Part shown: piece by piece, positions 15,773-28,942 of the stretch
How positions within the stretch are numbered: position 1 is the stretch's first letter
Layout: every line of letters starts with the position of its first letter
NCBI GenBank assembly: GCA_002269645.1
Contig: NIVC01001483.1
Coordinates: forward strand, 124,001 to 188,000
Source: Macrostomum lignano
Taxonomy: Eukaryota
Direction: 5' to 3'
Length of the DNA: 64,000 bases
Notes under the pieces: generated by a model
Seen by the model: only the letters and a program-made list of their open reading frames with translations
What the model was told of the DNA's origin: nothing
The model's database searches: none
Position numbers and translations under genes: made by a program

Positions 15773-18326
15773 TCAAACTTCTTGAAGGCCTATCAAATCG
15801 GCTAGTAGACGCTCCTGTTGAAATCTGATCAATTCTTTAGATGTCAGCTCGTGGCTTTGAATGCTTGTTTGAAATTTTCTAATTACAGTTAGAGCCAGAC
15901 TGTGATCTGAGCAGTACCGCATGAAAGTGAGCAGCCAAAGTGGGCAGTCAAAGTTCATGTAGCAGTACGCGTCATAGTTCTCCATTCGCAGGGGAAACCA
16001 GGTGGCCAGATGATCAGGTAGGAGGCTGGACAGATCCGGCCGGTTTAGGAACATGAAGCTGAATCTCCAGGCTCAGTCGCTGTTGAAAAGCTGGTCGAAT
16101 ACTGCCGACTCCCCTGACCCTTCTGCAGGTCAAGCAGCGAATTCCTTTATGCCTCTGCTTACCGTGCGACCGTTGCAGTTTGTCAAAACATCAGAAGCGG
16201 CCACTGTATCGTTAAATTTCAGACAGACCAGGGCTCTGAGGCTCTCGCGAGCTGATCGAGCACAGTCAGGCAACTCGCCAATCTGCTTCATCAGGGAGGC
16301 TTCGAATTCCCGGCTAAAGTCAGGCACGGCCAGAGATGCAAACGAATCTCTGACGATGTCATAGATGCTGTAATAACCGCGGAAGTGCAGCAGCCCCGTT
16401 GAAAACTTTGGATCGATTTCTGGGAGAATGAGAAATGGATGCAAATGAAACAAATTGTTTGACCCAATTTGGCACAGGCTGTTCTTGAAGCTCATCAGCA
16501 GCTGGGGCAAGTGGTCGATCACGTCTCTAAGAACTTGCACGATCTCTTCAAAACTGCTGCGATCGGCACCCTTCAGATACAGAGCCGCATCGCTCAAGAA
16601 GAAATGCTCCATGATTCGACCATCCGTATTGTCAGCGGCACAGCTCGTCTCGACACTGTCTAATAGTATCTGCACCGATTGACGGATGAGTGTCAAGAAG
16701 TTCTCCGGCTTCCACTGCTCTTCCGGCGTCTCCTCAAGCCTTCGGAACGTGACCGTCTTCGCGTGATACGCCTTCAGACCGTGCACTCTGCGACCGATCA
16801 CCTTCTTGACCAGATACTTGAGCGTGACGAACAGCTGGCCCTGCAGAGTGCTCAGACTCCGCAGCAGGCGTCTCTCTAAGAAGGTGGTGCTCACACGGAG
16901 CTGCTTGCCGGCCAGGCGGTGCCGCGTGAACCACATGACAGGGCAAGGCTTTGAGCTCGCGTGTGAGAGACTGCAGCACCGGCTGCGGGATGCTGGATTT
17001 GGTCAGTCGATGAGGCTGCAGCGGCTCGATAGCAGCAGAGGCGACAGGCGCTCACGCGGTCCACGGCGGGTCGGAGAGCCTAACCGTTCTCTGGCCGGGC
17101 TGGGCTGGAAGCTGATGAAGGGTATGAAACTACTGAAGACTATTATAACTTCAAGCCTGACTTCAAGTATGAAGCTTTTAGTACTGAATATATGCTTACC
17201 ATATCCTTCACAGATTATATGCCCGTCATATTCCACCACTAGTTCAGGATCAGGATCAATGCACCTGCAGACGTCTTTGAGATGATAAATCCTGCCTAGT
17301 ATGAGCTGCATCACGTCTATGTCGGATTCTGGGTCCGTTCGGCCATCCAGATGGCTGAGGCTGTTCCCCCAGCCTTCCGAATAGCTGCCCACGATGAAAA
17401 ATTCTTCACTGCGTAGGCGTTGTCTTAGTATGCGCTGCAGAACGTCCGCACACGAGCTCTGTAGGGCAGCTCGGGTCTGCTTAAAGCCAGCCTGCTGGAG
17501 GGAACTGTGCAGTTGCTGACTGAATTCTTCTTCGCTGAAATACAATACGTACGAGGAAGGGAAAGTAAGGCTCAGTATGAATTTCCAGATTAAAGTGTAA
17601 GACCGTGGGTTGAGTTGCAGTGAATAACAAAAACGTGAGGAGGCCTCACTGGCTCACGCCAATATTTTATTGCCAAAGTTGGGGTGGGTGTAAACACCCT
17701 AAGCACGCACACGCTGCAGCGCAAAATCCCAACCCCCAAACCGGCCAGACGTGCACATTTAAGTGCACGCGCACCAACAAGCCAGACTACAAAAGGAAAT
17801 TTACTATGAGGCTTTAATGAAGTTATATTACCTCAAGCTGGAACTGCTTTCATCAACTTGTATAGGCATCGGCTCATCTTGCACAGTCCCAGCATCTTCT
17901 AATAAATTATCACTGGCATATAGGGCCTTTGCAAGAAGTTCTGCAACTAGCTCGTATCTTGTGCGTTAATTTTCTAGCCAAGTCTAAAGGTGTCTGGTAA
18001 TCCCGGTCTGTTGCAGTGACATCCGCGAAGCATCGAAGCAGCGATTTAGTCGCTTCTGGATGTCCATTCTCAGCTGCAGCGTGCAGAGGTGTCTGTCCTG
18101 TAGTCGCTCTTGTCATGTTGACATCTGCACCAGCTCGTATAAGAGGCTCAATGGCTTTCCAATGACAAAACTGCGCTGCCAGAAAAATCGGTGAGCAGCT
18201 ATCGTTCTGCTTGGAATTCACTGGACTACCTTGAGCTGCCTTGAAGAAGCTCGTATAGAGTATCTTGGTCCCCTCGCTGAGCTGTGATGTGCAGTGAAGT
18301 CTCTCCTGTACTAGTCTGCACATCAA
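15773..18326 (-). pseudogene. Ankyrin + Mab-21/cGAS-like nucleotidyltransferase (cGLR-type) gene copy 1, disrupted
   Basis: ANK exon ends at 17832 (AG|GTAATA) and splices in phase 2 to 17534 (TTTCAG|C GAA GAA). NTase exon 17534-17200 has IVGSYSEGWGNSL...ESDIDV. Last exon 17104-15773 has RPAVD, LRVSTTFLER and AYHAKTVTF...EEQW. Frameshifts near 17965, 17080, 17000 and 16920; in-frame TGA at 16130-16132 and 16073-16075. 5' end not found. Confidence 0.85.
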
Positions 18327-18389
18327 CTTTCGAAGCCCCAGAGCGCACCAGCAGCCTGCGTGCTGTCTCTCCAGTGGCCTCTGATCCTC

Positions 18390-28600: not shown

Positions 28601-28942
28601 AAGATGCACCGGCGAGTTTCCCTCCCCGGCAGTGCGCAGGTTCGGGTTCGCAGCGCCCAACTCCATCAGCAGGCAAGCGCACTGCGAGCGTCCAAACGAA
28701 GCGGCCTCGTGCAGAGGCGTCCAACCTTTCAAATCTTGCCTGTCAACTTGAGCGCCGGCTTTAATTAGATGCCAAACTATAGTCACGTGACCATACTTCG
28801 TCGCCCACTGGAGAGCTGTTTTGCCCGACTCATCAGCGCAATCGATGCCGCAGCGCTGATTACGAAGTATCTGACATGTGTCTTTCAAGTTGCCTCTTTT
28901 AACGGCTTCGATCAGAGACTGATTTTCATTCGTTTTCATCAT
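22609..28942 (-). CDS. Ankyrin-repeat + Mab-21/cGAS-like nucleotidyltransferase (cGLR-type) gene copy 2
   Basis: ANK exons 28942-28577 and 27765-27288 (phase-0 junction verified). NTase exon 24978-24619 has [28 protein letters not shown]. Exon 23999-22609 is joined in phase 1 and has [17 protein letters not shown] and the Mab-21 motif [20 protein letters not shown]. The junction from 27288 (phase 1) to 24978 (phase 2) needs an unresolved extra exon, so the ANK fusion is partly inferred from copy 1. Confidence 0.8.
25140..26022. repeat. (TATC)n / GATA microsatellite, about 880 bp
   Basis: Tetranucleotide array with occasional TGTC and TATG variants; source of the SIYL ORFs. Confidence 0.98.
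26580..27200. repeat. 15-bp GC-rich minisatellite (GCCAGCACCAGGGGC)n
   Basis: About 40 near-perfect copies, intronic to cGLR copy 2. Confidence 0.97.
27810..28490. repeat. 31-bp minisatellite with internal hairpin
   Basis: Unit AATCCAAGCGACTGGATTTTGAACAACCTGC (variant ...GATCAACCTGGG), within the intron 27766-28576. Confidence 0.95.

Follow-up and report, generated by a model that had tools for sequence, protein, structure and literature searches.

Two related sequences at one locus

We analyzed a 64,000-nt stretch of genomic DNA (hereafter the window; positions 124,001-188,000 of contig NIVC01001483.1, assembly GCA_002269645.1), with the region 15773-28942 as the subject of the study. In this region, two related minus-strand sequences, an upstream copy 2 and a downstream copy 1, combine ankyrin (ANK) repeats with a nucleotidyltransferase (NTase) domain resembling that of cGAS-like receptors (cGLRs). 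The window is DNA of a eukaryote, containing introns and numerous microsatellites. The spliced translation of copy 2 produced 22 protein matches, most of them from the flatworm Macrostomum lignano and three from anonymous environmental sequences; the top matches are 94, 78 and 74 % identical, and single exons reach 99 %. As judged from sequence, the source of the window is M. lignano or a very close relative.

The motifs that a preliminary description of this DNA had listed for both copies, GS...DxD, RPAVD and [AT]YHAKT, were all found on the minus strand: copy 1 carries IVGSYSEGWGNSL...DIDV, RPAVD and KAYHAKT, and copy 2 carries ...DIDL, RPAVD and KTYHAKT. The intron that the two copies were said to share at a phase-1 position (CEGY-G and CSGF-G, respectively) was likewise located, with the donor TATG/GT in copy 1 (GT at 17199-17198) and TTCG/GT in copy 2 (GT at 24618-24617; here and below, a slash within a splice site marks the exon-intron boundary). 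The same description had spoken of a tandem pair of genes. The region instead comprises a single intact gene, copy 2, and a pseudogene, copy 1.

Gene structure of copy 2

The exons of copy 2 were placed using homologue alignments as a guide, giving a gene of five or six exons (28942-22609, or to 22469) in which every junction is GT-AG and the phases run 0, 1, 2, 1. Exon 1 (28577..28942) starts with the ATG at 28942, encodes ankyrin sequence (residues 1-122; Ank_2, E = 7.9e-20), aligns at 99 % in tblastn with the UniRef model P0001 and ends at the phase-0 donor GAG/GT. The ankyrin sequence continues in exon 2 (27288..27765; residues 123-282; Ank_2, 5.1e-31; 97 % to P0001), which is bounded by the acceptor CCAG/GTG and the phase-1 donor CAAG/GT. 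Exon 3 (26353..26443) is a 91-nt linker that ends in phase 2 and matches P0001 residues 283-313; the same exon plan is seen in P0004, encoded at another locus (L001). Exon 4 (24619..24977), entered through the phase-2 acceptor GGCAG/G and left through the phase-1 donor TTCG/GT, encodes the N-lobe of the NTase with G368-S369 and D390/D392. Exon 5 (22609..23999) is a continuous open reading frame (ORF) that supplies D449 (within RPAVD), the Mab-21_C lobe (TYHAKT; 3.8e-7) and a C-terminal helical domain that includes the motif SDSAWKF. It either terminates at the TGA at 22611-22609 or is spliced at GAT/GTGAGT after 22618 to an optional exon 6 (22469..22534), a 21-codon terminal exon with the acceptor TTTCAG before 22534, which encodes TELLTRCAELTLETAAAKLLN followed by a stop ending at 22469. 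The UniRef model P0003 includes the tail encoded by this terminal exon, P0002 includes a portion of it, and P0004 has an equivalent short last exon.

The resulting coding sequence of 2685 nt translates into 894 amino acids with no internal stops, or 913 with the optional last exon, and the NTase exon has no independent in-phase start. The phase-compatible GT-AG junctions, the single 894-residue ORF and the like plan annotated for P0004 argue for an ANK-cGLR fusion in which the ANK and NTase exons are joined in one predicted polypeptide. Two features of the gene given in the preliminary description, a pair of upstream ANK exons and a phase-2 acceptor at the NTase exon, hold in this model; the 91-nt linker exon had been overlooked, and the acceptor is GGCAG/G and not, as had apparently been taken, CCGTAG, both sites being phase 2. 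The closest homologues of copy 2, the M. lignano UniRef models P0001-P0003, are all mis-modelled: P0001 omits the segment with GS and DxD, and P0002 and P0003 have out-of-frame stretches.

Three of the copy 2 introns consist mostly of tandem arrays, namely a 31-nt unit repeated 21.5 times in intron 1 (27811-28484), a 15-nt unit repeated 41 times in intron 2 (26581-27189) and 882 bp of (TCTA)n in intron 3 (25141-26022). The long ORFs that the six-frame list contains here are spurious and result from these arrays. The sequence TTTTGCAG (28947-28954), which resembles a splice acceptor, stops 4 nt short of the ATG of copy 2 and could belong to an intron in the 5' untranslated region or serve as a trans-splice acceptor.

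Copy 1 is a pseudogene

Copy 1 (about 18373-15773) was tested by frameshift-aware protein-to-DNA alignment against copy 2, P0004, P0006, P0009 and P0017, the last being a protein from M. lignano that shares ~90 % identity with copy 1. Its most upstream part, an ankyrin remnant (17832..18373, minus strand) aligned to P0009, P0004, copy 2 and P0017, holds ~3 repeats distributed over three frames, with frameshifts at ~18240 and ~17950 and a donor after 17832; no further matches to an upstream ankyrin exon or start codon were detected in 18452-22472. The exon for the NTase N-lobe (17200..17534, minus strand; GSYSEGW...DIDV) is intact, with a phase-2 acceptor and a phase-1 donor. The remnant of the C exon (15773..17111, minus strand) begins at 17111 with the acceptor ATCAG/CT after an intron of 88 nt and retains RPAVD, AYHAKT and a Mab-21_C match (3.6e-5). 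It is interrupted by three in-frame stops, TAG at 17082-17080, three codons ahead of RPAVD, TGA at 16132-16130 and TGA at 16075-16073, the latter within the conserved SDSAWKF motif. Frameshifts at ~17028 and ~16910 bring the number in copy 1 to at least four, and the tail is shortened by ~30 codons. Copy 1 is a pseudogene that retains the catalytic motifs although its ORF is broken.

P0017 is continuous across the position of the TAG (GST, against G-stop-A in copy 1) and across both core frameshifts, and this comparison identifies ATCAG/CT as the true acceptor and the TAG as genuinely in frame. Rescue by alternative splicing was considered and rejected: the sole stop-free acceptor, TTAG/GCT, is phase 0 and would have to be joined to a phase-1 donor, and a GTGAGC...CAG mini-intron would remove a conserved β-strand region and leave the frameshift before LRVSTTF in place. 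An assembly error behind these defects is unlikely because three of the lesions are stop codons produced by substitution and copy 2, in the same window, has a 2.7-kb coding sequence free of defects. The junction from 17832 to 17534, which had been described as splicing the ANK exon of copy 1 in frame onto its NTase exon, does have GT-AG ends and compatible phases (phase 2), but only the last ~40 codons before the donor are in frame with it, the ankyrin repeats themselves being off-frame.

The NTase domain: family, fold and predicted active site

The Pfam model Mab-21_C (PF20266; cut-off, 24.1 bits) matched both copy 1 (E = 3.6e-5, 24.3 bits) and copy 2 (3.8e-7, 29.8-30.6 bits), and all nine of the family members scanned scored above the cut-off. 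Upstream of the NTase, the Pfam ankyrin matches are strong in both copies (1e-20 to 1e-31). When a profile built from nine family members was searched against all PDB sequences, the first match was 8gjy, the structure of Sp-cGLR1 (1e-7), followed by many cGAS entries (~1e-6) and MAB21L1 (6.5e-4). An AlphaFold2 model of copy 2 residues 312-894, with a mean predicted local distance difference test (pLDDT) score of 82.8 and a predicted template modelling (pTM) score of 0.83, showed the bilobed arrangement of the cGAS/Mab-21 fold, an α/β NTase core followed by a helical lobe. In a Foldseek search of the PDB, this model matched MAB21L1 (3.8e-6), Sp-cGLR1 (1.1e-5, 24 % identity), cGAS and MB21D2 (1e-3), with a probability of 1.0; by far weaker were the matches to the bacterial CD-NTase CdnD and to MiD49. 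Nothing pointed to membership of the OAS group: the Pfam matches include no OAS model, and the listed Foldseek matches contain no OAS structure.

The catalytic set of copy 2, G368-S369, D390, D392 and D449, is complete, and these residues are at least 90 % conserved among 14 paralogues with 29-43 % identity. In the predicted layout, β1 lies just before G368-S369, D390/D392 open β2 and D449 sits on a later strand, which is the usual NTase order; from motif and strand order, the three aspartates are candidates for the catalytic triad. The assignment to ANK-fused cGAS-like (cGLR/Mab-21) NTases made in the preliminary description is thus backed by the PDB profile search, by the model with its Foldseek matches and by the conservation of the catalytic residues, and copy 2 is, on its predicted structure, a cGAS/Mab-21-fold NTase with a complete predicted active site.

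Ankyrin array and C-terminal domain

The copy 2 protein consists, in order, of ~7-8 ankyrin repeats, a flexible tether of ~40-80 residues, the NTase and a helical C-terminal domain of ~230 residues. In the full-length model, the ankyrin array (residue 1 to ~235) is confidently predicted; residues 237-248 and 274-315 have pLDDT below 50, and the pTM score drops to 0.64, so the array is predicted to be flexibly tethered to the rest of the protein.

For the C-terminal domain of copy 2, there was no Pfam match and no confident Foldseek match, and the best entry in the PDB profile search was 3anw with an E value of 2.1. The domain was found with confidence in the M. lignano family and elsewhere only in the three anonymous environmental sequences. 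These are P0012 (V2I33_19315, from a 1065-bp contig of a metagenome-assembled genome labelled 'Kangiellaceae bacterium') and P0008 and P0011 (JGI metagenome contigs of ~1.7 kb), all 41-42 % identical to copy 2 and all including the flatworm-type C-terminal domain. The three sequences probably represent flatworm or other animal DNA, in the case of P0012 binned in a bacterial genome.

An expanded family in Macrostomum lignano

When 1.84 billion cluster representatives were searched with a profile, family clusters being counted at 50 % identity, 91 matched with E≤1e-30 and, at the looser limit of E≤1e-10, 369. Those strong matches for which the source was looked up all came from M. lignano, and the named matches outside this species (bivalves and an annelid) span only the core and Mab-21_C. 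Ankyrin repeats are present in 34 of the 44 top family representatives; the remaining 10 retain the core and the C-terminal domain. Among the paralogues, arrays range from 0 to nearly 30 repeats, and the start of the NTase domain varies from residue 1 to ~957.

P0004 (BOX15_Mlig012742g1), which shares the exon plan of copy 2, is 39 % identical to it over 97 % of the query. A second ANK-cGLR paralogue (positions 21310-25469 of locus L001, on NIVC01001205.1) lies on the same strand ~6 kb downstream of the P0004 gene and is 33-44 % identical to P0004 over three matching segments; tandem pairs therefore recur in the M. lignano genome. In two further models, P0056 (PAA59752.1, BOX15_Mlig012150g1) and P0178 (PAA80948.1, BOX15_Mlig018330g1), ankyrin repeats and a caspase domain (Peptidase_C14, 2.7e-25) are joined to a cGLR-family domain, and P0056 has degenerate residues at its catalytic positions (DMN for DID and KPAES for RPxxD). 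These models could represent either a true sensor-protease fusion or merged neighbouring genes. ANK-caspases have been described as limited to parasitic flatworms (2024, PMC11463336).

Comparison with known cGLRs

The preliminary description had read the two sequences as a family of receptors that couple an ANK sensor to an NTase. Such a family is not a new one, since both ANK-cGLR fusions and M. lignano members already appear in the survey of Li et al. (2023; bioRxiv 10.1101/2023.02.22.529553; PMC9980059), in the text of which ANK- and TPR-fused cGLRs are minor architectures and Table S2 of which includes M. lignano proteins with Ank_2 domains. According to Table S3, five M. lignano members were cloned without the ankyrin region for a screen of 140 enzymes. 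That table is silent on their activity, and the 15 enzymes that the text names as active include none from M. lignano (Li et al. 2023). The M. lignano cGLRs of that study (PAA86972.1/BOX15_Mlig012742g2, PAA45980.1, PAA57558.1, PAA93208.1 and PAA68676.1) belong to the same family as copy 2, and PAA86972.1 is the sister of P0004. P0004 and copy 2 have in common the motifs GS[FY]AE[GA]WGNSL, D[AS]D[IV]D, RPxxD, LR[VF]STSF and TYH[AV]KT, the C-terminal domain, the ankyrin repeats and the exon plan. Copy 2 is nevertheless a separate paralogue, its nearest entries being the unnamed UniRef predictions P0001-P0003 (94, 78 and 74 %, respectively). It is a further member of an already catalogued and functionally uncharacterized ANK-cGLR family, so that the prediction is a correct rediscovery.

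ANK-cGLRs of other animals, such as Stylophora pistillata, combine ankyrin repeats with a cGLR core as copy 2 does, a likeness drawn here from their description (Li et al. 2023, Fig. 1C, 4C and S2A). The flatworm proteins differ from these fusions in the additional C-terminal helical domain of ~230 residues, and the flatworm fusion may have arisen independently. With Sp-cGLR1 (8gjy) and vertebrate cGAS, copy 2 shares the bilobed Mab-21/cGAS fold, the GS, [DE]x[DE] and [DE] signature and the Mab-21_C lobe; it differs from them in sequence (14-24 % identity), in its acidic core and in its extra ankyrin and C-terminal domains. In addition, 20 residues separate GS from DxD in copy 2, forming a loop that is conserved but modelled with low confidence, whereas cGAS has about 11. 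MAB21L1 (5eog, 5eom), the best Foldseek match (3.8e-6), has the same fold at ~15 % identity. MAB21L1-type proteins have, in the text of Li et al. (2023, PMC9980059), no predicted functional active site and a developmental role. Where proteins of that type have lost the catalytic acids and consist of a single domain of ~360 residues, copy 2 conserves these residues and carries three extra modules.

Predicted mode of action and alternatives

We consider it likely that the two sequences are tandem duplicates of one ANK-cGLR gene of the Macrostomum lineage, of which the upstream copy 2 remains intact and probably works as a cGLR and the downstream copy 1 has decayed to a pseudogene. By analogy to what is established for cGAS and the characterized cGLRs, the copy 2 enzyme would be inactive at rest and turned on by a ligand; once activated, it would join nucleoside triphosphates into a cyclic or linear oligonucleotide second messenger, and a downstream receptor would read this messenger. 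Such ligand-triggered nucleotide synthesis is the predicted activity of copy 2. The ligand would more likely be a protein or another non-nucleic-acid molecule than double-stranded DNA or RNA, with the ankyrin array aiding recognition, because the NTase core is mildly acidic (isoelectric point, pI, 6.15) and the length of the array is highly variable across the family; nucleic-acid-sensing cGLRs have higher pI values, according to the text of Li et al. (2023, PMC9980059). No STING-like protein was found among the window ORFs scanned, and a look through the literature on STING in Macrostomum yielded nothing useful.

Several observations weigh against this interpretation. The joining of the ANK and NTase exons is deduced from splice logic and homologous gene models. 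PF03281, the model of the Mab-21 N-terminal NTase, produced no sequence match even at E≤10, the N-lobe giving only weak matches to NTP_transf_2 and MTPAP (E 0.02-0.15). We attribute this miss to sequence divergence of an N-lobe that is recognized by fold only; membership is unaffected, since the family is not defined by a match to PF03281, a single sequence model. The TM-scores (template modelling scores) of the copy 2 model to solved cGAS-family structures are modest (~0.45-0.58; target-normalized values across MAB21L1, Sp-cGLR1, cGAS and MB21D2, 0.41-0.58), and the assignment of D390, D392 and D449 as a candidate triad derives from sequence and strand order. The pI is a heuristic only, and the cores of other paralogues are basic, with values up to 9.67. 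Finally, the five relatives that were screened lacked their ankyrin regions, and Li et al. (2023) do not name any of them as active in their text.

The alternative that fares best, which we regard as possible rather than probable, accepts copy 2 as an active cGLR and assigns to the ankyrin array the part of an adaptor or regulator (in localisation, auto-inhibition or effector recruitment), the ligand being bound by the NTase groove, in the way of cGAS, or by the C-terminal helical domain. The characterized cGLRs in the text of Li et al. (2023, PMC9980059) all sense their ligand on the NTase surface, the modelled array sits on a disordered linker with no confident docking, the 10 of 44 paralogues that lack ankyrin repeats keep the core and the C-terminal domain, and the cores of some paralogues are basic (pI 8.6-9.7). 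The core of copy 2 itself is acidic, however, and arrays that run from 0 to almost 30 repeats look more like variable recognition modules than like a fixed adaptor.

A broader extension of the preferred reading, that of copy 2 as a ligand-triggered ANK-cGLR, is that the ANK-cGLRs of Macrostomum, which make up at least 91 clusters at 50 % identity, serve as a lineage-specific, hyper-expanded repertoire for pattern recognition, in which the ankyrin arrays of variable length would be the recognition modules and the C-terminal domain would couple to a non-STING effector. Coupling of this kind is hinted at because some paralogous models are joined to a caspase domain. We think it unlikely that this proposal holds in full; if it did, it would describe a new cGLR signalling route in a phylum that has otherwise lost cGLRs.

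It appears improbable that the family is enzymatically silent, acting like MAB21L1 or MiD49/51 as a scaffold or oligomerizing sensor through protein-protein contacts. MAB21L1 is the top Foldseek match, the models P0056 and P0178 link the domain to ankyrin repeats and a caspase, the active site of P0056 is degenerate (DMN, KPAES), and the text of Li et al. (2023, PMC9980059) names no active M. lignano enzyme; against this, conservation of the G-S, the D-x-D and the third D at 90 % or more in 14 paralogues that are only 29-43 % identical is hard to explain without catalysis, and MAB21L1-type proteins, as described in the same text, lack these residues. A gene-modelling artefact, with the ANK exons and the NTase exons of copy 2 coming from two different genes, seems very improbable: the exon joining at this locus is predicted from splice sites and homologous models, the introns reach 1.4 kb and are full of tandem arrays, and the UniRef models of the close homologues P0001-P0003 are mispredicted, but the four junctions are GT-AG with matching phases and yield one clean ORF, the NTase exon has no in-phase start of its own, the plan of ANK, linker, NTase and C exons is annotated for P0004 elsewhere, and the architecture is common to 34 of the 44 family representatives.

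For annotation, these results imply that copy 2 merits the name ANK-cGLR, that copy 1 should be flagged as a pseudogene and that the public models of the homologues P0001-P0003 are mis-spliced. Non-nucleic-acid ligands of cGLRs could reasonably be sought in this family, given its expansion, its acidic cores, the variability of its ankyrin arrays and the unexplained C-terminal domain, and Macrostomum is an experimentally tractable flatworm. This opportunity was already apparent from the published catalogue.

Other features of the window

Beyond the cGLR-like pair, the plus strand carries an ankyrin ORF (8325-9533) and, 0.8 kb further downstream, sequence for the C-terminal half of a protein kinase domain (10329-11063; 2.6e-32); the two (8325-11063) may form an ANK-kinase gene adjoining the pair. 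The N-terminal half of a kinase domain is encoded at 32788-33510 on the plus strand. The window also contains exons of an ERAP1-like M1 aminopeptidase (40199-45230, minus strand), a TALE/KN homeobox (59435-60460, minus strand) and a reverse-transcriptase fragment (1448-2164, plus strand). The segment 12001-14000 shows an extreme GC skew (-0.82) and long overlapping plus-strand ORFs (12190-14158), and is presumably another low-complexity repeat block.

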